A stretch of DNA of 64,000 nt. Origin: Chara braunii (taxonomy: Eukaryota; Plantae; Charophyceae). The notes under the pieces are model-generated. The model saw only the letters and a program-made list of their open reading frames with translations, had not been told where the DNA came from and searched no databases. Position numbers and translations under genes: made by a program. Of the stretch, positions 665-63,722 are shown in pieces (positions within the stretch are counted from its first letter, which is position 1; each line of letters opens with the position of its first letter). The stretch lies in contig BFEA01000025.1 of assembly GCA_003427395.1 (NCBI GenBank), forward strand, positions 5,201,308 through 5,265,307. The letters are read 5' to 3'.

Positions 665-683
665 CGTCCTTCGGGACATCTGT

Positions 684-715
<32 letters not shown>

Positions 716-772
716 GGCCCCTGCACAAGGATGACACACATAAATCAAGAAATGGTCCAAATTCTTTAAAAA
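665..772 (+). pseudogene. U6: Full-length U6 snRNA retrocopy (processed pseudogene)
   Basis: GTCCTTCGGGACATCTGTTAAAATTGGAACGATACAGAGAAGATTAGCATGGCCCCTGCACAAGGATGACACACATAAATCAAGAAATGGTCCAAATTCTTT matches plant U6 including the ACAGAGA box. It is followed by a short A tail and flanked by the 16-bp direct repeat AAGTTTAGTGTCTAAT (649-664, 773-788). Several differences are CpG transitions. Confidence 0.93.
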
Positions 773-6400: not shown

Positions 6401-7495
6401 CGAGAGTGTCTCGTGAGCTGGAGTATCTCATGCATCAACATGATGTTTTCTTGTATGTTCCTATTCTCCATGAAACCGGTTTGGGAGGGATGGATGATGT
6501 CTTCCGTTACTGGGATCATTCTGTTTGCTAAGGCTTTAAACAACATTTTGTACACTACTGTGAGGAGTGTTATTGGGCGGTAATTTCTGATATCCATCTT
6601 ATCCCCTTTTTTATATAGAAGGGTTAGTATCCCTCGCCCTACCCTTTCTCCCATCTCACCTGTGAGCCATACTTCATTGTAGAAGTCCATAACATCCTGG
6701 CTAAAAAAATCTCCTGTGGTTTCCCATAACTCCTTAGGGAAGCGGTCAATCCCTAGTGCCTTCTCCTCCTTCATTTGTAGGAGGGCGGTCCATATCTCTT
6801 GTTTAGAGAGTGGGGCCTCTAAGGATTCGCATTGTTCAGGTGTCAATGTTTTGTTTACCGCTTCCAAAAAATATTTTATTAGGTGATCGTAATATGGCGC
6901 ATCCGGCTTGTCCACATGAGAGGAAAACAAATCTTTGTAGAAATCGTATGTTATCTTAGTGCAACGGGGTATGGTCACGGTCGGGGCCAATTTCCTGACT
7001 TTCGGTTCGTAAAGTGCCTCGATCATGGTCCCTTGGATTCGTGTTCTGGCCAGGCTGAAGAAGTGAGAGTCCATCGCTCCTTCAGTGTAGAACCTGGATA
7101 GCCTTGCCCTTGTTTGGGCTCCCTGCCATTGATACTGTGCGTGCTTCAAAAGTTGGTCCTTCAAATCTTGTATGCGAGTTTGTAGTTCAAAGGTCCTTTG
7201 TTCCTACCCTTGCGAGTTTTGCTTCCGTTCTGTGTCCACAAGACTTTGCATAATCGTGATTTCTTGCTGGTATCGCTGTGCAACTAAATATTTGGAATAT
7301 TCTTTGCATTTTTTAGCCATAAAAAATGGTCCGTTGTTAAACCATGCGATTTGCGTTTTTTGTTGAGGGCGGTAGCCTTTGCAGAAGTCCCAAGCCTGCT
7401 GCAGCTATTTCTGGAAGGATTTTGATGGAAGCAGGGAGGTACTGAGTTTATAGTAGCTGGACTAATAGGCACATGGAGTCTTTCCTTCTCCCATC
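3433..7495 (-). mobile_element. 5'-truncated L1/Tx1-like LINE (ORF2 RT and C-terminal zinc finger), disrupted
   Basis: ORF 5827-7164 has YKKGD..NYRPITLL, IDFEKAYDHVDW, SVRQGDP and FADD. ORF 3911-4948 has CQRC...HIFMQC (zf-RVT). Poly(T) at 3433-3445. Stops and frameshifts lie between the ORFs. Confidence 0.93.
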
Positions 7496-14721: not shown

Positions 14722-15735
14722 NNNNNNNNNNNNNNNNNNNNNNNNNNNNNNNNNNNNNNNNNNNNNNNNNNNNNNNNNNNNNNNNNNNNNNNNNNNNNNN
14801 NNNNNNNNNNNNNNNNNNNNNNNNNNNNNNNNNNNNNNNNNNNNNNNNNNNNNNNNNNNNNNNNNNNNNNNNNNNNNNNNNNNNNNNNNNNNNNNNNNNN
14901 NNNNNNNNNNNNNNNNNNNNNNNNNNNNNNNNNNNNNNNNNNNNNNNNNNNNNNNNNNNNNNNNNNNNNNNNNNNNNNNNNNNNNNNNNNNNNNNNNNNN
15001 NNNNNNNNNNNNNNNNNNNNNNNNNNNNNNNNNNNNNNNNNNNNNNNNNNNNNNNNNNNNNNNNNNNNNNNNNNNNNNNNNNNNNNNNNNNNNNNNNNNN
15101 NNNNNNNNNNNNNNNNNNNNNNNNNNNNNNNNNNNNNNNNNNNNNNNNNNNNNNNNNNNNNNNNNNNNNNNNNNNNNNNNNNNNNNNNNNNNNNNNNNNN
15201 NNNNNNNNNNNNNNNNNNNNNNNNNNNNNNNNNNNNNNNNNNNNNNNNNNNNNNNNNNNNNNNNNNNNNNNNNNNNNNNNNNNNNNNNNNNNNNNNNNNN
15301 NNNNNNNNNNNNNNNNNNNNNNNGTTTTTTTTTTTTTTTTTTCCCCGCCGCTGGGGGCCTTTTTGCACCCATTCTAGACTATCTAAACCACAGAAAACAA
15401 AATGTGGTTGGTAGGCCCGATTTCACCGATTTCGAATCGGGCCCGATTTGGATCTTCCATCTCAAAGATTGAGGGCCCAGATGGCCACGATTTCAAATCG
15501 GTGAGGGCGGGAACTACTGGCCCCCGTTCCCTCCCCCATACTCACGCTGTACCCCCAATATCCCCCCGTTCCTGCCCTGCAGTTGTGACACTCCGCCGGA
15601 CTTCGACGCGCAACTTCGATGAACCCCACCAGCACCTGCCAACGCCCGCCATCGCGCGTGACCCCGCCGTCACCCGCCAACGCCCGCCATCGCGGTTCTT
15701 CGCCATCGACAAGGTAAGGGACTTAGTTGGGAAGC

Positions 15736-15792
<57 letters not shown>

Positions 15793-15870: not shown

Positions 15871-15895
15871 AATACATATATAGGTATATGCATGC

Positions 15896-16003
15896 TCCTG
15901 ATGAGTCGGTGAAACTCCGACGAAACAGTTTGTCACAGCCCCTCGTTTGTTGTCCTCTTCTCTCTCTCTGCCTACGGTTTACCGGGCAGTTCTATTTGTG
16001 ACG
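15896..16003 (+). mobile_element. 108-bp insert with 20-bp TSD starting within a hammerhead ribozyme motif
   Basis: TSD ATATATAGGTATATGCATGC at 15876-15895 and 16004-16023. The insert starts TC-CTGATGA-GTCGG-TGAAACT-CCGAC-GAAAC and has no poly(A). Confidence 0.85.
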
Positions 16004-16714
16004 ATATATAGGTATATGCATGCACATGGTCCAACTAGTGGTTAAAATACAGCAACGTAGTAGCCACACGGGTGGACTCCCAGGTCCGTAGGGATACTAG
16101 AGTTAAAACATCTGGTACCCTTTCGACCCCCTGGACGCCAGACGAAGAATCATCTGGGCGTACCGACCTCAGTTTTACCGACTATTGGATAGACATTGCA
16201 CCAGGATGGGACTAAGCCACATATACACACGCACAGGAGCACTTAATATGGACCTGATTCGTAAAAGGCTACCAAGGCTTTCCTTGAAAAAGCGCCGCCG
16301 GCCTCCGCTAGCTCCAAGCAACCCCGCAAAAAGGACTTCAAATGCATGGGCCGTTTTTTCGTTTTCTTCGAACAGACAGGCAGTATTTGCACCGGGCTAG
16401 GACCATGGTACAGGTACCGATGGGTAATCTGGACCGATTGACAAACGGCTGTTCACCTGAACCCCGTTCCCGTAGTTTTTCGAAGAGAACACCCACGCGG
16501 CCCTTTCAACTTGGCCCGCCTCGAGAAGTGCTGCTATCCTCCACTATATTTACTGTCTGCGGGTTTATTCCCCCATCTCGTTCTTGGCTGAATGACTGTA
16601 CTGCTTTGTGCGGAGGCTCTTTGACGATTGCTGTGAATGCTTGGCCATGGCGACTTTGGACTTGGATGGTATCATGTATGCTGACCTCGCGGAGAACCAG
16701 AGCGACGAGGAAGC

Positions 16715-19756: not shown

Positions 19757-20080
19757 GCACCTCCCATATGGTTGGGTCCTCCGACCCTCTCCTAACCCCT
19801 GCTAACTTACTAATACTAATTCTAACTGCTCCCCTCTAAAATCTACCCCTTGTTGTGTGAACCCTGTGTCGGACTAATATGATGGGCATAATGGCCGTCT
19901 ATTGTCCCATACTATTGGGATGGCTGTGTTCTATACACAAACCCCCCGCACACACGTGTAGTAGTGTATATTTCGATGTTCGAACGGAAGATTCATTCGA
20001 TTTTGCTCATCCTATCGATGGAAGTAGCGTGAGGCCAGCCGCGCGGTTAGCGACTTACCTGTCGGCCGGTGCGTTGCTCA

Positions 20081-20127
<47 letters not shown>

Positions 20128-20145
20128 CGGACGATGGATCGTCCG

Positions 20146-20194
<49 letters not shown>

Positions 20195-20282
20195 CGTNNN
20201 NNNNNNNNNNNNNNNNNNNNNNNNNNNNNNNNNNNNNNNNNNNNNNNNNNNNNNNNNNNNNNNNNNNNNNNNNNNNNNNNNN

Positions 20283-29432: not shown

Positions 29433-29613
29433 TCCCCCGAGGTCCCCTGGTTCCTGCCCTACAGTTGTCTCGCTCCGCCGGACTTCAACGCGCAACTTCG
29501 ACGAACCCCGCCAACACCTGCCAACGCCCACCATCACGCGTGACCCCGCCGTCGCCTGCCAATGCCCGCAATCGCGGTTCTCCGCCATCGAGAAGGTAAG
29601 GGGCCTAGTTGGG

Positions 29614-29683
<70 letters not shown>

Positions 29684-29753: not shown

Positions 29754-30057
29754 GTGCGCGTGTAGTAGTGTATATTTCAATGTTCTAGCGGTAGATTCGT
29801 TCGATTTTGCTCATCCTATCGATGGAAGTGCTCTCTCTCTCTCTCTCACACACACACACAGTCATGCTTTTTTTTAGTGTATAGCGAATATGACAACACA
29901 CACACACACACGCACACACGTGTAGTAGTGGATATTTTGATGTTCTAGTGGAAGATTCATTCAATTTTGCTCATCCTATCGATGGAAGTAGCGTGAGGCC
30001 AGCCGCGAGGTTAGAGACTTAGGTTAGAGACTTACCTGTTGGCCGGTGCGTTGCTCA

Positions 30058-30124
<67 letters not shown>

Positions 30125-30168
30125 AGCAGATGCTCTCTCTCTCTCTCTCAACAGATGATGGATCGTCC

Positions 30169-30229
<61 letters not shown>

Positions 30230-30473
30230 AGCGTTCACATTTTTATTGCAGATTCGGGGTCCTCTACGGTAGCGCAGCAAAACCCCGGCTTCACCAAAAA
30301 AAAAAAAAATTCCCTGCTGGGTTTTGGGGCCGCCTGGATTTCCCGGGCGGACCCCCCCGGGCCTGCCCGGCCGGGGGCCGCCTGGCCAGGCGGCGGCCTA
30401 GCCTAGAAAGAAAGAAAGGGGAAGAAAAAAAGAAGAAAATAGAAAAAACAAAGATAGAAAAAAAGAAGAGAAC

Positions 30474-33253
30474 ATGTTCGCGGACGATCTAACGGTCCTA
30501 ATCAGAGCGTCTGACTCCTCATTCAGGACACTAGCTAAAGCAATGGAAGCGTTCAGACTAGCCTCAGAAATGAAGATCAATTGGGGAAAAACAATTGGCT
30601 GGTGGCTATCCGAGGAAGAGCCCCTTTCACTCCAAGGCGACGAGGCGGCTATGACATGGCAAACGTCGGACACACCCACCCGCTATTTGGGCATACTAAT
30701 GACAAAGGAAGGAATGGCTCCCCAAATGGGCCCATCCATGCTGGCCAAACAGATCAATAAAATCGGAAGGTGGGGCAATGCCTTCACGTCCCTTATTGGT
30801 CGAGCGCCAGTCCTCAATACATCGGTCTTTTCAATGATGTGGTACATAGCCTCCATTTGGACAGTCCCGGGCAGCTCGGTTAAGGAGCTGAACCGAAGAG
30901 CTAGGCTTTATCTATGGACAGGAGACCCCAACAAGGACAAGGGCATATCTAAGATTGCCTGGCACTATGTTACAAGAAGGCCACAAAACGGAGGCCTAGG
31001 AATTATTGACCCCGGAACAGAAACGAAAGCCCTGCAAGTCAAATGGATCATCAAACTGCTGATGAAGCCGGACAGCGCCTGGAATAATCTGGCACTGGAT
31101 AGTATCAGATCCGTGGCCCCAGTTCTCTCCCCGGACAATATGTCAGGTCTGTTTTGGGTAATGAAAAAAGAATGGGTGATAACCACAGGACGTAGGAATC
31201 GAACGAGGAATAACAGACTCGATGACGGTTGACCACCCACGCCTTACTGGCCGGCACTACTCCGATCCTGGAGGAAAATATTTCCCAATAAGATAAACAG
31301 ACCCAAATCCAAGGATGAATTACTAAGGCAACCGCTCTTCGGGAATGAATGGATAACAAACGAGGCGGACAACCCACTCTTCCTAGAACAGAGGTGGTTG
31401 TCCTGGATCAAGAACGACATCTGGAAAGTTGACCACTTATGGAAGGAGGATAAAAAGGGCTGGATAACGGAACAAGAAGTCAGCTCCTGACTGAAAGGAT
31501 GCCACAGACGAGGGACCATTCTCCAGTATATACTTAGCTGTATCCCGCAGGAATGGACAGATATCCTGGTAAAAGATGAATCGTGGAGACCGGGTGAGTG
31601 GGGACTTATGATTCAAGATGTAACCCCCTCTAGAGCCTTTCAATTCTCCCATTTGCGCAAGGCTCACACACTAGGGCCACTTTCCTCTCTTTCCCGATTT
31701 CCCTCACCAATACTGGTACGCCAACTATCTTGAACTGCGATGTAGAGTTGCCAGTCTTAGAATCCTTCCTGCTCCGGAAAGTAAGGGTCCTAGGGGCATG
31801 GCCAAAGTCAGTCTTCAGACCTGACACTACAATCCGTAGCTTGGAGTTCGATCCAGCGGAATGGGCGTGGACGCCAAATAGGGCCAGCAACATTAAGACC
31901 AAAATTCCAATCCAGGATTACACAGTCAAACTTGGGTACAGACTGTCTCTAAAGACCAAAAATCCAGACCCTATTATCAAAAACAGATGGCGGAACCTCG
32001 TCAGGCAGGAAGCAGACAACATCACACGAATCCACTGGGAAAAATTCAAACGCATCAGACCAATCAAGACTAGACGTTTGCAGTGGCTGATTGCGTACGC
32101 AGCCCTACCGGTGAACCAATGGCTACACACTAGGCGGAAAGCCGCAGACCTCAACAGCTCGGAGTTATGTACAGTCTGCACCGAAGGCCCTGTAGAAGAT
32201 ATAGTTCACTGCCTAGTGCTTTGTAAAGAGGCTACTGAATACTGGGCAAGAGCTTCATCACTCTGGGACTCCCTCTTCACATCTCCCTTCCCCGATCAAC
32301 CCATTCAACTTCTCCTCTTGACTAACATCCCTGATCAGGCGCAAAAGGCAGAAAGGATCTGGTTTGAACTCATCAGGAAAGTGACCCTATGGGTCATATG
32401 GAAGGAGAGATGCAGCAGGACAATTGAAGGGCGGTCTAACCCACGGGAGAAGGTGTGGATAGAAACCAGAACATTGATACAAGCTGAGATCCTCTGCAGA
32501 TGGCGGAAGACCAAACAAGCTTGGACAGAAGATGAAGAGCAGCGTAACAAGGAGAGGCAGAGATTCTACAGGAATTGGCTGATAAATGGCAAGATTGCAG
32601 AATTGCGAGAGGACCGGGTATGCTGGAAGGAGTGGCACAATTCAGTACCAGAAAGAGGCTTTCACCAGCAGGCAACGTCTGAGGGCATATTCGCATCCTA
32701 GGCCTCAATCGAATGTAAGCGGCCCCTCAGGGGCCCAGGGGGTACGAACAAAGAGGAAATATGGGAGAGAGAAGGACAAGTTAGAGTAGGTGAAAATACG
32801 GGAGCATGAACGCGGGTTACAAAGGAAGGCTTTATCGCAGGGGGCCGGAAGCAATGCCTGCCAATGTCCAAGATCGACAATTGGAGGTTGGGCGCACAGG
32901 CGAGGGGTTTAGGGTTTAGGGTTTTATCGTAGATCTTCCAAAGGGGCAGGGAGGTGTGTGGGGAGGAAACAGGTCGGCAAGGATAACGGATGAGCTCTTT
33001 CTAGGGACAATGGCGCTATCTGGCAGACCTGGACTCCAGGTCTGAGAGGAAAGAGAGGGATAGGGCAAGCTGACAGTCAATCCTCCACCGCGGTGGAGCA
33101 ATCAATGCTGTTCAGGGATCCTTCGGCCTGACGGAAGGAAGCGTGTGTGAGTGTTCTTGATGTAATGTATATTTTGACTTGCCGGTGGAATAGGAACCGG
33201 ACTGACGCTCCCCAGAATAGGAACCAGGACCATTAAAAAAAAAAAAAAAAAAG
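30474..33253 (+). mobile_element. 5'-truncated L1/Tx1-like LINE
   Basis: Begins at FADD of RT. Contains GGLGIID and zf-RVT CTVC...HCLVLC, then a 3'UTR with the conserved terminal motif and poly(A) at 33235-33253. Confidence 0.93.
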
Positions 33254-43396: not shown

Positions 43397-46300
43397 ACTG
43401 GGAGTGTCGGCTACCAATGGAAGGGAGACCGACGACAGGGAAGACACCTTAGATGTAAGACCAGTCGTGGCCATATACAGCCCAAGAGCTTCCTTGAAAG
43501 GCAACCTCCAGTGAAGACCCTGGTGGCAGATCGCACAGCTACCATATACAGCCCTCGGCACAAGCGTATTGCCAGAATTACCAGCGGCAAGCCTGGCAAT
43601 CACCTTTGCCCTGAAAGTACACAGGATGGGACAAAAAGAATTGGGGGACAAACTGCTGGTCCTGCAGGAGGAAGGAGAAGAGGCGACTCTGCAAATAGTG
43701 TCCGCACCTTCTCCTTGATCACACCAAGATCATTAGAACCGGTGAAGCAGAAACACTGAATCATAGATGAGAGGGGAGAGCAAAATGATGGGGGGGGAAA
43801 GGAATTTAAAAAGGTAAAGAAAAGAGTGGAACTGGACATAAGATCTTGGAATGTGCACGGCTTGGCCACCGTTTTGTCATCCCCAGCGAAATGGTTCAGC
43901 TTGACAGCTAACCTTAAATGGTTTGACAATGACCCTCCAGATATAGTCTGCATTCAGGAAACACACCTCACTGACTCTGATGAGCACCAAGCCACACAGC
44001 ACGAAATAGAGAGAAGGCTGAGACACGTATGGAGAGCTGAATGGGTAAGCATCCCCAATTCAGCCTCGGCAGGTGTACTAATCCTCCTTAACGGAAAATC
44101 CAAAGCATTACACCACCTACAAGTAAGCCAAGTGACCAAGGACCTCGTAGGGGGCAGATGGATAAGGATGGATTTCAACTATATGCAGGAGGAAATAACA
44201 CTACTAAATATATACGCTCCAAACACGAGCGCCCAAAGAAAGGAATTAATAGAAATAATCAAGCAAGAATACCCGAATCACCAGCATATCATAGCAGCCA
44301 CGGACTGGAATGCTACGGTGAACCCGCTTCTCAACAGGATTTCCCACGCTAGAGAACCGTACGACGAATCAGACACCCATACAATGATAGATCTTATCAC
44401 AGAGAAGAAGCTAATAGACCCCTTCGAGGGGAAGACATCCGGAAACTAAGAGATTCACTTGCACTAGGAAAACTCAACAGGGAAGAACATCCTTTTCCAG
44501 AATTGACTACTTTTTGATCTCAGAATCAGTTTCTGGAGCTGTACTACCCACCACTGTATTCAGACCTCCCTTTTTCGGAGGCTTTGATCACAAACAGATA
44601 GGCTTGATACTGAATTTTGGCGTAGACAATGAATCAGGTCGAGGTTTCTCCAAGATCAACGACTCTTTATTAAAATTGGAAAGTTTTAGAAAAGTAGTCA
44701 AGCAATCATGGGAAGAATGTTCCCTGCAGAAACAAGAGGAAAGCATACACCCAAACTTCGGAAAAACCCTAAAATACGTAAGTAAAGAACTAAGCAAGGA
44801 ATCAAGAAGGGAAGCCAAAAGAAGAGGGGAAAGGCAAGAACTCCTAGAATCCATAGTGGAGACAGCCGAATATAACTTGATCCACAACCCAGGCTCCCCA
44901 ATGTACAAATCCCTACTCTCAGCAGCAAAGGAAGAGTTGGCACAATGGGCAGATTGGAAGAGAAGGGGCCTGAGCATCAGAGCTAGGATAAAGGATTGGG
45001 AGTGTAATGAATCCATGACGAAATTATTTTTCCAAAGAATCAAATCCAACTGGGGAAACAACAGAATTCTTGAGCTGAGAGATGAAAGGGGGATACTAAT
45101 CGGAAAAACCTGCTACAAATAGCCACAAATTTCTACAAGAAACTATATACATCACAGTCAACCAACGACAACAGAGGAACTATTGTGAGAGCGAGGGAAA
45201 AGCTCCTGAGGCACCTTGAGACCTGTATCAAACCGGAGGCAACAGCTTACTTAGACAAAGACCTCGCTCTAGCAGAAGTGCATAGAGCACTGGGTTCCAT
45301 GCAACCCAACAAGGTCCCAGGCATAGATGGGCTAACGAAGGAATTCTGGCAAGAACATTGGCCACTCCTAGGAAGTGACCTCTTGCGCTTTTATCAGGAA
45401 GCCTACAAGAAGGGGGGATTAGGACAGGACATTAGCACCGGGATTGTAACGCTACTCTACAAAAAAGGGGAAAGAGAGGACATCAGAAACTATAGACCAA
45501 TCTCTTTGCTGTCAGTAGAATACAAAATCTTAGCAAAGATCCTAGCCAACAGAATCAAAGAAGTAACCGACAAATGCTTTCATATGGACCAAACAGGATT
45601 CATCCCAGGGAGATTCATCCTGGACAGTGTAATCTGTCTGAACGAGGCAAACAAATTAATAAGGGACAAGAAACTAGAAGCCGTGATCGTGGGACCAATT
45701 TTCAGAAAGTGGGTGAAGGTTTTGTATGCAGAGGCAATGGGGAGGGTCCAAGTTAATGGTCACCTATCAGAATCATACAGAATGACGAGGTCGGTAAGAC
45801 AAGGCGACCCACTGGCTGCCCCAATATTCCTTTTCGTCATGGAGGCAATAGCAGCCTTCCTGAGGAAGGACCCCTCAATAGAAAGACTACAAGCCCGGGA
45901 TGATGGAAGAAACGACCAATTCCAACTCCCAACAGCGATGCTGTTCGTGGATGACCTAACGGTGCTTATAAGAGCGACAGACTCCTCATTTCAAGCACTG
46001 ACGAGAGCCATGCAAGCTTTCCAATTAGCATCAGAAATGAAGATAAATTGGAAGAAAACGGTAGGGTGGTGACACGCGGAGACCCCCCCCCCACCAGACA
46101 CCGAAGCAACACAGGGGTTGCAATGGTTGGATCGCCAAACCCCCTTTAAATTCCTTGGAATATCGGTAACCATGACAGGGATCAGTAACTCAATAGCAAC
46201 GAACCTGCTGGCAGCCGTCATGAACAAGTACTTGGGATGGCAAAAGATATACACCTCTCTGGCGGGAAGAGCACTAGTCATTAACTCGTCAATTTTCTCC

Positions 46301-49300
46301 ATGGTCTGGTACACAGCGTCAGTTTGGGACCCACCCACAACTTTCACGAAGGACCTTAGGAAAAAAGCAACAGCTTACTTATGGACAGGGGACGCATCCA
46401 AGAACCAATTCATATCCAAGGTCGCTTGGAAATACGTAACCAATCCAGCAGAGGAAGGAGGGCTCAGCCTCATTGACCCCGCAACAGAATACAAAGCTCT
46501 CCAGACAAAGTGGATTCTGAGACTGATCCTCAAATTAGAGCTACCATGGCAGAAAATGGCCCTTTAACAAATAAGAAACCTACTACCGTTTAAAGCACAT
46601 GACAGCATCGAAGGCCATACATGGCTCATGAACAAATATTGGTCACCTAGAAGAGAAGGAAACAGACCTAGGCAAAGAGGACGAATGCCGAACTCAGACC
46701 CCCCAAGCGGGCATTGGACAAAGCTGATATCAGTGTTGAGGGAAGCCTTCCCACAAAGGAAAAGAGGCCCAAGGTCAAAGGAAGAAATCCTGAGACAACC
46801 CCTTTTTGGGAACGATCTATTGAAGGACCAAAATGGAAAGACATGGTCCCTCAACGGGAGAGGCAAGAGATGGAGGACCTGGGTGGAGAGAGGCATATGG
46901 AAGATCGAGCGCATATGGGACGAAGGAAACAGCAAGTGGAAATCAGAAAGAGACCTTAGAACAAAACTGAGAGGCCACCACAATTTACAGAAGAACTTAG
47001 AAGTATTAATAGACAGCATTCCAATAGCCTGGAGGTCAACCTTGAAAAGGAACAGAGTCTGGAAGAAAGGAGAGTGGGCAACATTGAAAGCCCAAGAAAC
47101 CCCCTCAGTAGCCCTCCGCCTCATATGCCACAAGGGAACAGATAGGAACATGGTTAAATTTGAGGTACACGAATTGGAAAACACAGACAAAGCAATAGTG
47201 ACGGTCAGAAAGGACACGCTAGCCAATCTAGACTTTGGTCTACAGGATCTCAGGAAAGTTAGGGAACTAAAAAACGAGCAGAAGAGACAAAAGAAAGAAA
47301 GAAAGGGGATAGAAACTCCTACCTGGTTGTTCAGGCCAAATAAAGACATTTCAGAGCTAGAAATCGACCCCAATGAGTGGGGCTGGTACGAGAACGGAGG
47401 GAGGGGTAGAGCTAAGAAGTGGATTGCACTGCATGAATACACAGTGAAAAAAGGGTATAAGTTAAGACGCAAGCTAGAAAACCCGCAACCGGTCATAGCG
47501 GCAAGGTGGGAAAAAACCTTACAAATAGACCTCGCCCCCTTGAGCACAATTCCATGGGCTTACCACGCATCGATCAGACCCCAGAGAGTAAGAAGTCTAC
47601 AATGGCTGATAATTTACATGGCGAACCCTGTCAATGCCTGGTTGGAAGCAAGGCGAAGAACAGAAGATAGAACGGAATCCTCGGCACATTGCCAAATGTA
47701 TCAGGAACAGGAAATTGAAACACTAATCCACTGCCTACTGGACTGCCAGCACGCCAAAGCCCTGTGGACCAAATGTAAAAAAGCCTGGTCCAACATTTCT
47801 CCCAACGTTTTCCCGACAAAGCAATTCTACCTGTTGACAGCAATAGACAGGGAAAACTTAGTCACCGAACAAGACAGGGAGATCGCAGAGCTTCTGCGAA
47901 GGAGAGCACGATGTGGGGGCACAATAGGTAAAAAGAAGATAACAATAAACGAATTGTGGGAAGAAGCACGGGGAACGGTAGAAACAGGCATAAGAGTGGA
48001 ATGGAAACGAGCCCTAGAGAAGATAGACAGAGAAATAGAGGAACAAAGAAGGACTAAAATACGGAAGGAATTTGAAGAAAAGTGGCTGAAGGGGGAACGA
48101 TTGGCAAGGATAACCGGAAAAGCCCTTCGCTTTACGGACTGGTGGGATTCAGACCATCCAGGGATAGGGCGGAATGGACCTAACACAATAGATCTAGTCT
48201 GATAAAAGAAGAGCCTAGAATAATCAATCATAGTCTCAGAACAAGAAAAGCGATAGGACATAACGCCTGACATCTACCAAAAAACAAACCTCCCCTAATG
48301 AACCATCCTCAAGAATGGAGGCACGAGACAGGAAAGAAAACGTACGTGGGATAGCATAATAGGGTAGCCCAGAGGAAAATAGCAGTAAGAGCAGTCTTCC
48401 GGGAGGAAAAAAGAGTAGACAGCCAAAGAGAGAGCGTCACAAAGTTCAAAGGCCATAGCCTGGTATTAGCACTACGGGAAAGAAGTTCAAATGCACCTCA
48501 AGCAGACCGACAGTCACTCATCAGCATCCCCGAACCTTCACACATCATTAGGGATCCCCCATAGATAAGGGCAATAGCCAGGCCGAACACATCAGAAGGA
48601 CACAGGCTAGAATACTAACCAAGTCACAGCACTTCAAGTAGGCAGGCCCAAGGACCACAGACAAGTAGTGCAAATAGTCCAGACAGAGTAAAGGGTTCTA
48701 GTAAAGCCACTAGAGAGAGGCTGTCTAGTCCAGTTTAAGCATCAGGGACCACCCAATAAAGATACGGTCTAAGAAAAGGATCAATAGGGATCAGGGTTTT
48801 AGCCCATATTTAGACCCAAGGTCGATAGAGTCCAAACTCCAATTTTTTTAGTGGGAGTATCAGCAATTACCCAAAAAGGGACAGGGAAATTTAGCTAGAG
48901 GTTAGGGATCTAACAGAAGTAGCTAGCAATGAACATGGACAAGGTTTAGGGTTTCAACATGACCACGGAAAGAAGCCTAACCGGCAGCTTCGGCAAGTTA
49001 AGTAAATCTGTAAGTCAAGGAGTTGAGAGAAACAGGCAGGTAGAGACTCAAGGAGGCAAGCTACAAATCACCAGAAGGATAAGGCAGTCAGACTAGCTTT
49101 CAAAAGTAGCAGTTAAATAGAGCAGGCTAACTCAGGCAGGGGTGAAGGGGGGGTATATCCTTCCTTCCGGAAGTAATCAATGCCATCCTTCGGGCCTCCA
49201 CACCATAAGGGGGAGGAGCGTGTGTGAGTGCTTATTCAGTCTTATTGTAATATTTTCTGACTTGCCGGTGGAATAGGAACCGGACTGATGGTCCCCAGAA

Positions 49301-52758: not shown

Positions 52759-53094
52759 GATTTTCCTATTTTTCTCACAGAATTTGAAGTTTCAACTTTG
52801 AAACAGAATCATTGGTGATGAATCTGATGATGTCATCGATAGTCAGACATTGAAATGCCATCTTTTAACGCCTTTAACTCGTTGAGCTGTTTGTTCCGTC
52901 CAATTATAAAGTCAAATTCAAAACATAAGCAAGAGTTTGGTGGCACCTGTTCAAAGAGGTCCAAGCCTCCAAAGGGGGGGAAATGGAGTGATAGAGATGA
53001 GAAAAACAGAGATCAGAAATGTCATCTTCCTGACAACTTCCTGTCAGGGTCGTGTGGCTGATGGCTTGCTGTGGTTTGCTGCCACGGACTGCAG

Positions 53095-53168
53095 ATGCGA
53101 TGTCTACCAAGCTGCCTCACTTCCAGTTGGAGCTTTCTGCAATATTTTGTTCAGTTCAGGGACCACAG
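53095..53168 (+). CDS. AAE17: AAE17/18-like exon with AMP-binding P-loop
   Basis: TGCAG|A...ACAG|GTAAT. Encodes CDVYQAASLPVGAFCNILFSSGTTG in phase with the preceding exon. Confidence 0.9.
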
Positions 53169-53532
53169 GTAATGAAGGTGCCTGAGTTCTATATTTTGGA
53201 GCTTTTCCGTTTTTTGAGAAATGGTGCACTCATGTGTTTCAGGCAACGCAGGCTTTTAGAGTCTGGATGAACAATTGTGCATCACTTGCTTCTGAATTGA
53301 TTGTATCTCAAAGCAGAGCAGAACAACTGTGCTGTTGGCTGTGCTCCATTTGTTGAGGTTGAGTCAAAGGGAGATGTACGTACTGTACTATGGCATGGCA
53401 GCATCCATACCTTCGTCCCTTGGGGGACTTACCTGTCGACTTACCTGCAACCCCATAGCTCCATCTTCGTCTTCAGCGCGTCCGTATCTGCATCAAGACA
53501 CCACCTTTCTGCAGGTCAGTACCTGGTTACAT

Positions 53533-53713: not shown

Positions 53714-53796
<83 letters not shown>

Positions 53797-54927
53797 GAGT
53801 GTTGAGACTGGGTTGCATTGGACTACAGACCGACATTGGACAGAGGCACTGGGGATACTATTTTGGAGACTGATGAGTGACATTTGAGTTGATGACATCT
53901 CCATTCCTCCTCCTCCTTCGTCTCTTCCCCCTCCTCTTCATCTATGGATGTTTGCTGGCCTGGCGCACTTCGTCTGTGTGTTTGATGAGTGTGTTGCAGT
54001 CAGTCTGCGTCATTTTGAGGCAGATTGTGGTATATCGGTCTTCCGCTATGCTATCTTTGCTCTATCTCTTTGGGTCGGTTCTTGGTTCTGATCTTTGCCT
54101 TGTAGGCATGCGACACACACACACGCAATCAGTTTTATGTCTGTCTATTCCTCCCTCTGATTTTTTCTAAGTATTTTTCTGTGTGCCCAACTGAGCACCC
54201 TTAAGTAGTGCCAAACAGTGGGTGGTTCCTCGTTTGGAGTGCCAACTGCACTCTTAGGGGGGCCGCTCAGTTCGGGATGTCTGTTTTGTCTGTGGGTGAT
54301 GGCGGATGCTCGTCGGAGTGTCTCCCTGGCTCAGTGGGTGGTGGGAACCAACAGTCTGCGGGGTGCGTCGTGATGTGAGTAGGTCATGTGCTGTTTTGCT
54401 CCGTGTTGGATGTGTGGACGGCCTCGTCTGCGCTCCGCCGCTGCCCTGCTGCCTGTCCCGCTTGCTTCGCATGTGGTTCTTTGCAGGTTGATGTGTTTGC
54501 TGTGTGGTGTGGCCGTGTGGTTAGTGTTGCCTTGCGCTTCGCTGCTCCGCTGCCTTGCTGCCCTGCTGCTGGTCGTGCCTTCCATGTTTGCTGCTTGCGG
54601 GCCTTGCTGGATGGTTGCCTTGTTGCTGATGCCTTGTGCTTTGCTCCACGGTTGCCGAGCTGCTGGCCCGCTCGCCCTGTCGTCCATTGCAGTGCGGTTG
54701 CCCTGTTTGTGTTGTCTTGTGCTTCACTACACGGTTACCGCGCTGCATGTCCCACGTGCCATGTCGTTCCTTGCAGTTGTTTTTGGCGTTGTGCAGCCCT
54801 GTTGCCTCTACTGTGTTGCCAGGTGCTGCACAGGGTTGCTGCCCACTGTTATGTTCCGCATGAGCACAGTCTGCCTTCAACAAGGGTCAAAGGGTTCATG
54901 ACCCAAACCATCAAATACGGAGATTCT

Positions 54928-54987
54928 GCAGATTGTCGAGGGTTCAGCCTCCTGATGAGTCGGTGCAACTCCGACGAAACATTCTGT
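54928..54987 (+). ncRNA. Complete type III hammerhead ribozyme
   Basis: GCAGATTGTC / stem I GAGG-gttcag-CCTC / CTGATGA / stem II GTCGG-tgcaact-CCGAC / GAAACATTCTGT. The core is intact, with predicted GUC cleavage after 54937. Confidence 0.9.
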
Positions 54988-54998
54988 CATCATCAGTT

Positions 54999-55278
54999 AA
55001 ACAAATAGCATGTTTCATTATATAAAGAGCAAAAGGAGGCCGGGAATCCCTCCACATCTCAACCCGGATGACTGTGGCCATTACCCAGATTAGGCTAGTA
55101 TTGCGGGGTGGTTCCTGTGTTCCTACCTTCTATCTGTTCACATCATAGTTGCGGTGCACCGGTGCGCACTGTGCTGTGCGCTGGAATGACAGTGTGCGCA
55201 CTGTGCGCCGTGCGCAGTGTGGTGCGCGCGCTGAGGGAGGTGCTCTATGTGTGCAAAAAAAAAAAAAAAAGACAGGCC

Positions 55279-55332
<54 letters not shown>

Positions 55333-55426
55333 NATGACAGTGTGCGCACTGTGCGCCGTGCGCAGTGTGGTGCGCGCGCTGAGGGAGGTGCTCTATGTGT
55401 GCAAAAAAAAAAAAAAAAAACAGGCC

Positions 55427-55510
<84 letters not shown>

Positions 55511-57751
55511 CAACAAAGGGTCCCCTTTATGTCAGTTCGAGGGCCCCTGCAGGTACCTTGAGTGGCTCCTACAACGCATGTGGAGCCATTGAGGGCCGCT
55601 GCTTCAATGAGAAGGATGGCCTCGTCATGCATGAAAGACATGGGGGCAGACCACCAATATATGCTGTGGATTCGAGTTCAGGGCTGTAGCTCGGCAGTTA
55701 TGGGTCACCAGTTCAGCTAGACCCTGTTCGTGTCTCCACGTGATTTTCAGGGCCTCCCTCCACCACTCACCAAATGTATATAATATTAGTAGAATGAATC
55801 TTCTGCTAAAACATGGAACCATACACCGCCATATGCTATGTACTCACCAAATGTATATAATATTAGTAGAATGAATCTTCTGCTAAAACATGGAACCATA
55901 CACCGCCATATGCTATGTCTTTTGTGCATTTGGTGAGTAGCGGAGCAGGCCCCACTGGACGTATTCGTAAGAAAACAAAAACAAGAAAACGAGAGAGCCA
56001 TGGGCATCTTCATCCTAACCCATATCTGCCGACATGCAGACCTGAACGCCAATGTTCAGCATATATTGGTGGTCGGCTGGCCATAGAAAACGCAACTTGT
56101 GATCTCTGCGAAGCTTCGCGGGGCAGGTCGTTATCAGGCGACTACCCCTTCTTGCGAACTTACCCCACCACTGTGTGGGATTTGTAGAAGGGAGCGGGAA
56201 GAACATCTTTCATACCCCGCCTAAAAAAAAAGATGGAATGAGCCCTATTTTTTAAGTATTTTATGCTTCGCCATTCTGAAACTTTTGGGGGAAGGGCCTG
56301 CCGAAATCGAAATTTGGCAGCCCTTACCCAAAAGAAAATTTTGAGCTGGGGGTGCGGCCGGTTTCCGAGCTTGCACGGTGAGTTTAACATTTTTGCCGAG
56401 TTGTGGGCCCTAAGAAATTACGAAACCCTTCAAACCCCTACTCTCTTTTTTTTTTTTGGTGGACCTAATTTTTCCAGTGCGCTGTGCGGTGCCCTGCGTG
56501 CGGCGCGCAATTCGTGCGCAAATCCGCGCACCGAGGTGCGCCGCAACTATGGTTCACATGCTATTCCTGAAAAAAGGAAACTGGATTAACAACCAACAAA
56601 TAGTAATAAAGGAAAAAGCTCTATCTAGGTCCCCATTTACCCTTCTAAACGCCCCTAGGTCCTCCTCTGTCTAACTTCTCCTTGCCTCATTCTTTCTTCC
56701 TGGTCCTTGCCTTAAACCCTAAACCCTACTGTTGCTAACCTCATTCCCTTTGCTATGGCCTTCTCACCCTCTCTGTCTCCACGAAAAAACGAGGCCTGTA
56801 GCCGGGATAGTTGCTACTTTACCATTCCCTAGGGTTCCTGTCTTTCAGGTCCTGCGCTTGGTCCGGTTGCTGCCTCATCTGCCACTGTGGTCTTTTCCAC
56901 TGTGCCCAAATCTCTGTCTCCATTAGGTTTAGGAGGATCTCCCTTGCTTCCTGTTCATGCATCGGTCGCTTCCCTATTGTAACCTGACAGCGTCTTTTCC
57001 AAATTGTCCATACTGTGTACTGTCTTATGAGATGAAATAGTTGCTTCACGAAAGCTTGCGAATCTCTGGGGCAGTTGTGTCCCAAAAGCAGGGTCTCTTT
57101 TTCTTGCGGGAAAGGCTTCTGCATCATCTGCTCCAGAGGGTTCTGGCTATTTCCCATAGGCTCTCTGCCTTTGGGCATGTCAGCAGGCCATGCTCCATTG
57201 TTTTCACTGAACCCTGCTGGCAAACTGAACACAAGGCATTGGAGGGGTCCCTTCTTGCTCGGCTTCTTTTTTCGTTTAGCCAAGCGTTTACTGGCAAGGC
57301 TATGTGGGCAATTGGCCACTGCAAGCTTCTGACCCGGCCAAGTCTGATCCTATTGACCGTTGTCCATGGTATTGTTGGTAATTGCTCCGGGGAGAACCCC
57401 ACTCTGTTCTCCCACCGCTTCGTGAGCACCTTCTTCAGAGAGTGGTGCCGCCTTCTCAGTCGATAACCAATTCGCGTAGTGTACTTTAGTATGCTGACTC
57501 TTTTGGAAATTCTCAACCTTCCTCCTCTGAGATTCCACGCCCATTCCACCGGGTCACCATTTAGTTCTTTTATTGGACTGGTTGGGCTAAAAATCGTGAA
57601 ATCCTCCATCTTCCACTACTCTTACTTTTTTGTACGTGTCGCGCTTGGATGGTGATCGGAGTCTTGGAATCCTGGTCCAAGAGACAGGTGGTGCTTCCTA
57701 GGTTCGTGATGAACCAGCCGGGAAGGAGTGGCTGAACACAGACATGTACAA
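54999..57751 (-). mobile_element. 5'-truncated LINE (zf-RVT region plus 3'UTR), no poly(A)
   Basis: DPVEWAW, SLQWPIAHIALPVNAWL and CSVC...HGLLTC. Candidate 8-bp TSD CATCAGTT (54991-54998, 57752-57759). Confidence 0.75.
55144..56551. mobile_element. Non-autonomous hAT-type DNA transposon
   Basis: TIR CATAGTTGCGG/CCGCAACTATG, perfect 8-bp TSD GTTCACAT, and GTGCGC subterminal repeats. Confidence 0.92.
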
Positions 57752-59841: not shown

Positions 59842-60858
59842 TGCAGTAACCCTGTTCACAAGTAGCCTGGGGCTCAGAACTCAGCCCCAGGAAACGTAGA
59901 TCTGAGTTGGTCTGCGCTGGGCTGTGTGACCAAGACACGCCCAGTCCTGAGTCTGTCGAGTGTGGCTGTGTGACCGAACGCTGCACAGGAAATTCAAGAG
60001 TCAAAGTCGATTGTAGAGTCAAAGGTACCGCACCCAGGCCCTTGGTTGGATACACTCACTTGTTGTGCGCAGGTACCCAGACAGCATCCTGGGCGGAGGG
60101 AATTCGGTTTCAGGCCAATCTGGGCCCTCATTCGCATTGAGATTTGGACGGCTGAAGGATACAGCATCCAGGGTCCAGACCCCGCGTCAACACTACATAA
60201 GAGCTGACTTCCTGGCTTTGACATTCATTCAGTCTTGCATCAATGCTGGCTTCACGCGTTGACTTTGACGCTGGTGCGACGCTGCGACACTGGCTGGACG
60301 CTGGCTCTATGCTGGCATATGAGAAGAGACGGCGACGCGCTGCTGGCTGGCATGGTGGCTGGCTGGCAATTGTCTTCCTGGCATGCTGACGTGGCAGCTG
60401 CCACACGCCGCCGCTGACGTGGCTGCTGCCACATGTACTCTGACGTGGCGGGGCTACGTGATTGATAGTGCTGTTCTGATTCATCGTCACTTAGGAAGGA
60501 GATCAAGACTGTGGGGTTATAGTAAATACGTACCTGGTATCTTGATGTCGACATTATCCAGTTCGCTGATGAAGACAGGCTGACGTGCCACGTGGCACAT
60601 TGAGAGAGAACTTCAGATTTGTGTTCGGGTTATTGATTATTGAGGTGGCGAGAGAGGAGGTAGCCCGAAGCAGGAGTGGGCATTGTTGATTTCTCCCCTC
60701 TCAATCTATTCTCCCCTCTATCTCCTTCGTCTGTGTATGATTTCCCATCTCATTCTATTTGGACACAATTATGATTATTTGACATTCATCAGCAGGTTGA
60801 TATCTATATGGGCTGGCATTGTTGACAAGTATCTTCGCCATCTGGGTTCATTGCAATT

Positions 60859-60870
60859 TGGTATCAGAGC
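60859..60870 (+). promoter_or_regulatory. Primer binding site for initiator tRNA-Met
   Basis: TGGTATCAGAGC, 3 nt after the LTR-terminal CA. Confidence 0.92.
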
Positions 60871-61885
60871 TATACTTCCGATGATGTGACGAACAATGAC
60901 GACTTGTATGACGACGGTGAAAGTGGTGACGTGGACAAGAGAGGGACAGCGCACGTCAGGTGTTGACGTGGCATTGGTATCTCGACAAGGGAAGACCAGC
61001 AGGATCGATCGCATCTGCGATCGGGACGACACTGCTGACGTGGCCGGTGACCGTTAAGGAGTGCTGATGTGGCATTGCTGACTCACCACTCGTTTACTGT
61101 GGTGAGAGGCTTAGGGTTGACGTGGCTTTGTCTGACATGGCACTCCATTACCTGGCTGACGTGGCATTGTACGACGCACTGGTACCGCTCCTGACGTGTA
61201 TTCCACTGATGTTGCTGACTGGACCATAGTGTTGACATGGCAGACTCAAGCGCTGCTGTGTTGGCACACCAGGGGATACACGTGGCAGGCATGAAAGTGA
61301 CCGATGACATCAACGCACATTGCTGACGTGCACCCCATTGATGATTATGATTGGACATGCTGACGTGGCATACTCTTCGAGTTGCTGAGTTGGCATGCTA
61401 GGGGTGACACGTGGCAGGCACGGTTGTGCCTAAGAGAGCGTTGCATTCCGATGACCGAAGCGTCACGGCTAGAAGACTGACGTGCCTGTGGTGCCAAACG
61501 TCAGATTGGGTGTTGATCATACAGGATTGAAGGAGAAGCAACAGCAAGGGAAGAACGCTAACTATTATTGTGATATTGTTGGCGGACTTACCTGTTGTCT
61601 TGTGTTGTGTTGTGTGCCTGTGTACTTGTGTGTGTTGATGATCATGCTGGCCTGAGTCACGGTACCTGAAATAGAAAAGAATGTCATCACATTGAAATTA
61701 GAACAGCAATCAGAATTAGTAAAATTCCTGTTCCTTGTTATTAAAACTTTTTGTTCAGATAGTGTGAATCTGGTTCGGGTGACCGTTAAAATTATTGTCT
61801 CTTTTATTTATTTTTGCGGTAGAACAACCTGGCCGACGAATTTTCTTGTTTCTGTCCTCCGAAAATTTCTTACTTCTGGAAATGT

Positions 61886-63722
61886 TTGCAAAAGTTTATT
61901 CTGACGAGATTCGTGATCACATTCTTGTTTTCTATTTCGATCACGCTCTCCGTGGGCGAAGGACCGTCTGAGCTTAAGACTCGGAGGCAGTCTGAGAATA
62001 AGAAACAAGAGTTGTTGGCCTTATGGAACCAGTTCTTGACAGAAGTACATCTGTTTGGACCGGATGTTGAACAACACATCCGTGATAGATTTGATTTGCA
62101 GACGGTTGAAGACCGTCTGAAGAAATCTATCACAGTTGTGGAGGTTGTGGCAACTGGGACCAGAGTTTCCAAACCGATTGCCCAGGGCCGACAGGCGTTG
62201 GACCAGTTTGCCTTGAAGCAGCTGGAAGAAATAATGGAAGCGACTCGTAAAGGCGAGACTAAGCCAGAAGTAACTGAGGCTACGATTAATGCAAATATAC
62301 AACAGTTGAAAGAAACATTGGCCGCGGAAGAAAGAAAAAAAGAAGAATTGGCCAGAAGAAGAGAACAGGAACAAAGAAGAGGACAAAGAGTTAAAGAAAG
62401 TAGACAAGTAATTGGAACAGAAGTTGGAGAACAAACTGACATGTCACATACATTGTCTCATATTGTGACATACCTTACCTTTCTGGAAGAGAAAATCGAC
62501 AGGCAGCAAACTCAGTTAGATGAGAATGCTATAGGATTACGAACCATCGCAAATATTGTGAAAGGAAAGAACCAGATAGAGGGTGAGGAAAAACAAGAAG
62601 AAAAAGAAGACAAGAAAGAAGTGCGAAAGTTGATGGGAGATGCTATGAAGTCTGTTGTACCAACAATTTAGACAACGACCAATGGGAATGGACCACCGAG
62701 TCCACCATCCTTTCCATCTCACTCTTCTCATTCATCTCTTTCTCCTAAATCTCCTCCTTCAACAACTCTGGGTAAGACAAGCGCAGAACCGGAGAAGCCA
62801 AAGAAGAAAGAGAAAGTGAAAATGAAATTGCCTTTTACGTTTAGTAACAAGAAAGACGAGAGCCTGTTGCTTTGGATTGCTGAAATCCAAACGTATGTGA
62901 GCACCGCCCCGGTCGAGCCGGAGTCTCAAGTTGTTGGCCGAGGCTAATGGCGCGGGGTTCGAAGACATCGGCGAGTGGGAAAAGACCCTGACATTGAAAC
63001 TGTTCTTGGCAAAGATCAAGGACCGCTTCCTCGATAAGACGACGGTCGATAAGGCGTTTGACCAGTTAACATCAATTGGTCAAAAGCATTGGACGTCGGT
63101 CAAGGCTTTGTCCCGAGAATTCGATCGATTACTGCAGGTCCCAGGATTGAACCTGCAAGACAGCCAAGTGTTGTACATCTACTCCTGCGCGTTGCCTGAG
63201 CCCATCCGGGGACACCTGGTGGCCGAAGCAAAGTCAGGTAAGTACAACTATAGGCAATTTCGCCACCTTGCTCTGCAAAGGGAGCAAATGACTTCTCAAG
63301 TCAAAAACTCCTATGCAGCCGTAGTTAAGTCTGGAGGAGGAGGAGGAGGAAGGCCGTACAATGGGAAACGAATTCTCTGGTGACAAAAGCGCCAGGACCA
63401 CACCCTTGTCGTCTTTGACGATGACACAGTGGAAAAGTGACCATTAGAAGATAAGGATAATAACAGTGACTCCAGGAAGGGGGAAGTCACTGGTGTTGTG
63501 CCCAATAAGGGAGGGCCACCCAAAAATGGAACAGGGAAGAAACCGAGACCATTTCCATGACACCCTGGCATTGCCGATGGGAAGCCATGGTTGAAGATGG
63601 GAATGACTCGCGAGACTTGGCAGGAGCGCATGGACAATGCACAATGTCTTAAGTGCGGCACACCGGGACATGTGATCGGATATTGCCCTATGATCCGTAA
63701 CCCAAAAGCGAGCAACCAGTAG
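61886..63722 (+). pseudogene. gag: gag (disrupted)
   Basis: Coiled-coil ORF 61886-62671, KVKMKLPFTF, AFDQLTSIGQKHW and a CCHC knuckle, ending in TAG at 63720-63722. Confidence 0.85.

Follow-up and report, generated by a model that had tools for sequence, protein, structure and literature searches.

A type III hammerhead ribozyme motif in a dispersed non-coding repeat element of Chara braunii

The hammerhead motif and the element that carries it

The DNA analysed here, hereafter the window, is a 64,000-nucleotide stretch of the Chara braunii assembly (contig BFEA01000025.1). A type III hammerhead ribozyme motif with an intact core lies at 54930-54985 on its + strand. Rereading of the sequence confirmed that the core nucleotides GUC, CUGAUGA, and GAAA are intact, as claimed in the initial annotation, and that the three helices have the lengths given there (4 bp for stem I, 5 bp for stem II, and nine positions for stem III). 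The cleavage triplet GUC occupies 54936-54938, and the predicted cut falls after C54938 and before 54939; the two other core strands are CUGAUGA at 54952-54958 and GAAA at 54976-54979. Helix I (54939-54942/54949-54952) consists of 4 bp (GAGG/CCUC) with a 6-nt loop, GUUCAG, and helix II (54959-54963/54971-54975) of 5 bp (GUCGG/CCGAC) with a 7-nt loop, UGCAACU. Helix III (54928-54936/54979-54987) comprises eight pairs, one of them a terminal G-U, and one U.U mismatch. Helices I and II are closed by loops and helix III is open. All 11 invariant core positions are present, together with the A15.1-U16.1 pair, formed by A54979 and U54936, and the nucleotide at position 17 (H, not G), which is C54938.

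When the Rfam model RF00008 (Hammerhead_3) was searched, as proposed in the initial annotation, it matched 54930-54985 end to end (model positions 1-54) and the pairs were checked. The match scored 42.9 bits, with an E value of 2.4e-8 on 301 nt and of 5.2e-6 on both strands of the whole window. This score, although significant on the window, is below the Rfam gathering score for Hammerhead_3 of 48.5, which explains why a default Rfam scan returned the U6 gene only and no hammerhead. The pattern CTGATGA..CGAAA occurs three times in the window, compared with 0.23 occurrences expected. In an isolated 64-mer, the hammerhead fold was calculated at -18.8 kcal/mol and an alternative hairpin, the minimum free energy (MFE) structure, at -20.6 kcal/mol. 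As judged from its sequence, the hammerhead is probably cleavage-competent.

We found that the motif does not stand alone but is one arm of a dispersed repeat element. Block order common with a second locus (L006, on another scaffold) and RNA folding delimit a whole non-coding element of ~0.88 kb, predicted to form a rod, at 54122-54996 on the + strand. Its conserved 5' block (54122-54384), recognized by homology with L006, follows a short (CA)n at ~54110-54124 and holds the left rod arm (54295-54364), a diverged reverse complement of the hammerhead block that pairs with the right arm. An A-poor, variable centre (54385-54890) contains degenerate repeats of 83-109 nt and has an RNA fold z of -2.59. 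The right, or 3', rod arm is the hammerhead block itself (54923-54994, with the tail TCATCATCAG to 54996), which belongs to a subfamily designated B below and was recognized by homology with L006 and L005. The long ORFs of the element are all of low complexity.

The segment 54172-54384 is 78% identical over 219 nt to L006 84237-84019(-), and a weaker 5' extension matches 54122-54146 to L006 84308-84284. The arrangement of the 5' and hammerhead blocks in L006, both in order and in orientation, agrees with that in the window, and the 5' edge follows a short (CA)n at both loci. The L006 copy, which is decayed, is split by an 8.8-kb LTR retrotransposon, whose LTRs lie at 83835-82723 and 75946-75037; when this insertion is discounted, the blocks are ~430 nt apart, compared with 505 nt in the window. 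Since the centre does not align between these two copies, the unit length and the ends are approximate. The 5' block was found together with the hammerhead block in two copies only, those of the window and L006. The window copy lacks ~40 nt that L005 and L006 have in common after the tail, and from this comparison its 3' end may be truncated.

No direct repeats or LTRs were found flanking the hammerhead, and an exact tRNA-Met primer binding site (PBS) search of the window gave none within the element. The sole exact site, at 60859, lies 5.9 kb off and adjoins an LTR and gag that belong to a different element. The lack of a gypsy-type LTR/PBS context reported initially thus stands. No second hammerhead was detected in 53790-56300 at E values up to 10, and the single type III motif is not surrounded by tandem units. 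Because each copy has a single hammerhead and is not arrayed in tandem, the locus does not account for how a unit-length or circular RNA would be released. A search of the element found neither a tRNA-like head nor bacterial-type promoter or terminator sites. No clear target-site duplication (TSD) was found around the focal copy; the pair AGGCATG/AGCATG was considered, but it is weak and lies 10 nt beyond the assumed ends, and it was not counted. Upstream of the element, the strings CTGATGAG (53866-53882) and GCAGATTGTG (54016-54030) resemble pieces of a hammerhead and may be scraps of older copies.

Related copies and the predicted RNA rod

We searched for relatives by blastn with the 77-nt hammerhead block as query in 302 kb of C. 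braunii sequence, comprising the window and seven assembly stretches (L005-L011, 238 kb) picked via matches to the reverse-transcriptase and retroelement proteins of the window. Eight copies of the block were found, and the focal motif accordingly belongs to a dispersed, hammerhead-bearing repeat family of C. braunii. Among these eight copies, the focal one alone has the full core and all three helices. Four of the loci (L008-L011, 88 kb) contained no copy of the block, no hammerhead reached the Rfam gathering score in the 238 kb outside the window, and a metagenome scan for the family motif gave 0 matches.

Four copies constitute subfamily A, one in the window (15896-16003) and three in L006 (near 8984, 23814, and 23982). 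The unit is ~110 nt long, and its start falls within the ribozyme motif, at the helix I 3' strand; since these copies have no cleavage site, they cannot cut themselves. The three copies in L006 extend ~70 nt beyond the ribozyme and end beside (TA)n. The sibling in the window is a 108-bp retroposon copy on the + strand, which starts inside the hammerhead (TCCTGATGAG...), adjoins (CA)n, and is flanked by a perfect 20-bp TSD (15876-15895 and 16004-16023). This duplication and the (TA)n or (CA)n tracts that A copies abut are signs of retroposition in the relatives. The sibling (15898-15925) has the loop UGAAACU, as claimed, but it represents only the 3' two-thirds of a hammerhead and lacks the GUC triplet and the 5' strands of helices III and I. 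The 5' ends of the A copies (15896 in the window; 23818, 23979, and 9025 in L006) all fall within a 5-nt span, 8-13 nt downstream of the would-be cut, in loop 1 or the helix I 3' strand. The ribozyme cut alone does not explain where these copies start.

Subfamily B consists of the focal copy and two others, which have in common the loop 2 sequence UGCAACU and the tail TCATCATCAG. The copy at L006 74683-74758(-), whose GAAAC core is changed to AGCAC, is 86% identical over L006 74685-74755(-) to the focal block (54923-54994), and the copy at L005 21783-21859(-) is badly decayed and matches that block in part. A third type, at L005 31127-31203, has CAAAA instead of CGAAA and is followed by (CA)n. 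Homologues, which the initial annotation had asked for, do exist, and one of them has a compensatory change: a helix II G-C pair is replaced by A-U through a double change in the L006 B copy. At the site of the helix III mismatch the window has T and both other B copies have A, which indicates that the U.U is a derived defect.

Type III hammerheads with helix II and loop 2 identical to those of the Chara sibling were observed in two phage contigs (L001 3338-3366(-) and L004 3908-3936(+)), and the same helix II pattern is matched at L002 5000-5028(+) and L003 4493-4523(+). The viral scan gave no match other than phage hammerheads with this helix II and loop 2, and these were rejected as relatives of the element. 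The likeness probably reflects a widely conserved loop 2 consensus and not common descent.

The + RNA of 54165-54996 folds at -337.9 kcal/mol (z -4.74), compared with -261.6 kcal/mol (z -1.11) for the - RNA. In the outer helix, 54295-54364 pairs with 54923-54994 through 57 pairs, 46 Watson-Crick and 11 G-U; the symmetric positions contain 0 A-C mismatches against these 11 G-U pairs (binomial p about 0.001). The arm duplex was calculated at -80.2 kcal/mol in the + RNA and at -52.6 kcal/mol in the - RNA, and shuffled hammerhead blocks against the same upstream DNA gave a mean of -53.5 and a best value of -62.1 kcal/mol. The differences between the arms are transitions, all of which keep the + strand pairing. 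The excess of G-U could alternatively come from a strand-biased mutation process. When the rod pairs were compared with L006, 37 were unchanged, 8 were changed on one side, 2 were changed on both sides, and 10 were broken. Five G-U pairs are common to both loci, which indicates that those pairs predate both insertions. The L006 arms (-52 kcal/mol) are not above the shuffled controls on energy alone, and no arm was found for the L005 copy; since neither is better than background, the rod rests mainly on the window copy and on homology.

The equilibrium pair probability of all three hammerhead helices is practically zero in the full-length RNA, where imposing them requires 12.9 kcal/mol; with the left arm removed, the hammerhead fold has a probability of ~8%. 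The + RNA is thus predicted to form a rod, like those of retrozymes and viroids, that hides the ribozyme. The proposal that the RNA self-cleaves within an intron is weakened by this prediction, in which the ribozyme strand is locked in a -80 kcal/mol duplex with the upstream arm. In the Avsunviroidae PLMVd and CChMVd, the hammerhead strand is paired in a long helix to a partly complementary opposite strand, and the most stable fold leaves the ribozyme inactive, so that its action has to be transient. The Chara hammerhead strand is likewise predicted to be paired in a long helix and inactive in its most stable fold. The opposite strand of these viroids encodes a working ribozyme of the other polarity, whereas the left arm of the Chara element encodes none on the minus strand: its complement has no working core, having lost it or never had it. 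The Chara element is, furthermore, genomic DNA and not an infectious RNA.

Possible origin of the element

Since the motif is an arm of a ~0.9-kb non-coding element with a predicted rod that hides the ribozyme, it is most likely part of a mobile element rather than a device of a host gene. Type III hammerheads, a length of 600-1000 nt, and a lack of coding capacity are described for plant retrozymes (Cervera, Urbina and de la Pena 2016, PMC4918200). The ~0.88-kb element has these three features and is, in addition, highly self-paired in its predicted fold. It resembles the plant LTR retrozymes (PMC4918200) in that both are non-autonomous, non-coding, self-paired elements of several hundred nt to 1 kb with type III motifs in the green lineage. 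Unlike them, it does not have two direct LTRs of 300-400 bp each with a hammerhead, so that there is one hammerhead per copy and not two; it has no tRNA-Met PBS, no 4-bp TSD was seen, and the host is a streptophyte alga and not an angiosperm. With the metazoan non-LTR retrozymes (PMC7229834; bioRxiv 10.64898/2026.07.22.740005), for which an origin from Penelope-like elements has been proposed (bioRxiv 10.64898/2026.07.22.740005), it has in common the lack of LTRs, non-autonomy, and a proposed dependence on Penelope-like elements. The metazoan elements form tandem units of 170-400 nt with type I hammerheads, whereas the Chara element is a dispersed single copy of ~0.88 kb with type III. In C. 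braunii itself, Chlamys subclades (Chlamys-2_cBra, with a 3' hammerhead) and PLE-X families are reported to carry canonical hammerheads, and Chlamys elements in general to have an insertion bias for (CA)n (Craig et al. 2021, PMC8557442). Compared by their published description (PMC8557442), Chlamys and PLE-X share with the Chara element the genome, hammerheads, (CA)n, and frequent truncation, but no reverse transcriptase or GIY-YIG ORF is attached to the Chara element.

On balance, we consider it somewhat probable that the focal unit is an old copy of a non-autonomous, retrozyme-like non-LTR retroposon that was processed by its hammerhead, stabilized by its rod, and copied by a partner. The hammerhead would process the element transcript, either transiently during transcription or in transcripts longer than one unit. 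The rod would then stabilize the element RNA, which an autonomous element could reverse-transcribe into DNA with its machinery. The main candidates for this partner would be Penelope-like Chlamys elements, because hammerheads have been published in C. braunii subclades and because of the (CA)n preference of Chlamys. A search around the motif and a Pfam scan of ten long ORFs revealed no ORF for a Penelope-like reverse transcriptase or for GIY-YIG, and truncated tails would have none; the mobilizing partner is therefore inferred only. The window copy would be an old insertion that kept its core by happenstance and acquired the U.U in helix III. Should host transcripts be cut at all, this would be a side effect, and one disfavoured by the sequestration of the ribozyme in the rod.

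The initial annotation placed the motif on the sense strand in an intron of an acyl-activating-enzyme (AAE) gene. The sole basis for this gene is a putative exon of 40 aa at 53048-53169 (+), which ends with FSSGTTG, is preceded by AG and followed by GT, and lies 1.76 kb upstream of the hammerhead. The motif is indeed on the same strand as this piece, but the gene is unproven, as it consists of one 40-aa piece without a homologue. Searched singly, the exon had no match in Pfam or in PDB. A match from an exhaustive search, P0121 (DUF7732), was discarded as spurious, since it is a repetitive protein sharing only a 14-aa repeat. A language-model Atlas placed the exon near AMP-binding fragments (score 0.90), which is a lead only. 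Regular expressions for the AMP-binding boxes A5, A7, A8, and A10 and for 'PK' continuations found none downstream on the + strand. The remaining 10.8 kb of the window holds no plausible downstream exon on this strand and is filled with repeats, including an LTR, PBS, and gag on the + strand.

An exapted ribozyme that cuts the AAE pre-mRNA from within its intron and so modulates the gene would account for the SSGTTG-ending piece with its GT donor on the same strand, for the Atlas lead, and for a core that is intact in the focal copy while its relatives are decayed. We regard this as very improbable, because the exon lacks a homologue in Pfam, PDB, and the exhaustive search, chance alone would yield its nine-position motif about 0.5 times in 64 kb translated in six frames (a rough estimate), and no further AMP-binding motif or exon follows it on the + strand of the window. 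Moreover, the motif sits in a repeat element, its helix III mismatch is derived, and the ribozyme is predicted to be sequestered in the rod. The amniote intronic hammerheads HH9 and HH10 (de la Pena and Garcia-Robles 2010, cited in PMC5680766) are comparable in being on the sense strand and, possibly, in being intronic. They are described as conserved at orthologous sites across species (PMC5680766), whereas the Chara hammerhead is a repeat copy and its host gene is putative. The reading as an intronic regulator is thus unsupported, and on present evidence the motif should not be taken as a regulator of an acyl-activating-enzyme gene.

Two further explanations accept a repeat origin or a loss of function. 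The inverted arms might be explained by a Penelope-like (Chlamys) element of which only a tail remained after severe 5' truncation, with an inverted truncated copy beside it. The 3' hammerheads described for Chlamys-2_cBra and the inverted 5'-truncated copies described beside Penelope-like insertions (PMC8557442) are in line with such an event, as is the short (CA)n at the 5' edge. It is quite unlikely, since the left block, the arm, and their spacing recur in L006, which indicates that the arrangement was inherited and not made at this locus. In addition, the sequence that follows the hammerhead in other copies does not recur in inverted form to the left of the left arm, the arm differences are the pairing-preserving transitions noted above, and no Penelope-like ORF is nearby. 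The motif might also be a dead relic that kept the consensus letters by chance and lost cleavage through its 4-bp helix I, the U.U, and competing folds. The score under the gathering threshold, the MFE structure of the isolated 64-mer, and the pair probabilities of the hammerhead (low without the left arm, ~0 with it) point in this direction, and with B copies that differ by ~14%, unchanged survival of a core of ~15 nt would not be unlikely. The full set of invariant core positions with the A15.1-U16.1 pair and C17, and helix lengths that fit the consensus geometry of Rfam, argue against a relic, and the tertiary contacts of the ribozyme do not enter into nearest-neighbour energies; we therefore consider a relic unlikely.

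Beyond the old retroposon copy that we favour, a bolder form of this idea is that the 0.88-kb unit represents a living or recently living non-LTR retrozyme of a streptophyte alga, with a type III hammerhead, a viroid-like rod of which one arm is the hammerhead, Penelope-type integration, and circular RNA intermediates; we hold this to be possible but rather doubtful. If true, the element would occupy an evolutionary position between hammerhead retroposons associated with Penelope elements and, in land plants, the LTR retrozymes and hammerhead viroids. In the published division, type III hammerheads belong to the LTR retrozymes of flowering plants and type I to the non-LTR, Penelope-derived retrozymes of animals. 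A charophyte type III hammerhead with a rod and a non-LTR, microsatellite-associated lifestyle would blur this division. The element would then be a concrete and testable candidate for the origin of plant retrozymes, and perhaps of hammerhead viroids.

Other features of the window and of the Chara loci

A U6 snRNA gene is located at 666-766 (+) of the window (103 bits). More U6 copies and a U2-like match were observed at L006 53994-54092, L011 18932-19040, and L011 17254-17369, and the weaker of these U6/U2-like matches may be retroposed copies. Shortly downstream of the element, 55186-55510 consists of two tandem units of 148 nt that are 99% identical, each ending with a run of A16-18 and then (GA)n; a weak match to these units lies in L005 18530-18664. 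The arrangement is like that of a poly(A) retroposon that has been duplicated, or of a duplication made in assembly.

Retroelements are frequent in the window. A nearly full-length LINE at 43760-48200 (+) has endonuclease-like, reverse-transcriptase, and zf-RVT parts in consecutive + frames, and other LINE pieces lie at 3911-7164(-), 31730-32701(+), and 57124-57609(-). The segment 24876-28189 (+) encodes a gypsy-type protease, reverse transcriptase, and RNase H with 87% identity to Chara proteins. The best matches of the reverse-transcriptase ORFs of the window are C. braunii proteins, with 66% identity for the LINE and 87% for gypsy. At 60387-63383 (+), an LTR, with 75% identity to those of the retrotransposon that splits the L006 copy, is accompanied by the exact tRNA-Met PBS at 60859 and by gag-like ORFs (61.9-63.4 kb).

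At 20071-20201 and 30048-30236, (CT)n...(GA)n palindromes enclose a short stretch of unique sequence. Both gave sub-threshold matches to many miRNA models on both strands, which are most likely artefacts of low-complexity hairpins. A duplicated segment lies around these palindromes (20.5-21.5 kb and 28.4-29.4 kb, 95% identical). An exon-like segment ending with ...FFAIDK and then GT occurs at 15552-15769 and again, with 89% identity and 13.9 kb apart, at 29434-29651; as far as can be judged from the sequence, this repeat suggests a tandemly duplicated gene or pseudogene.
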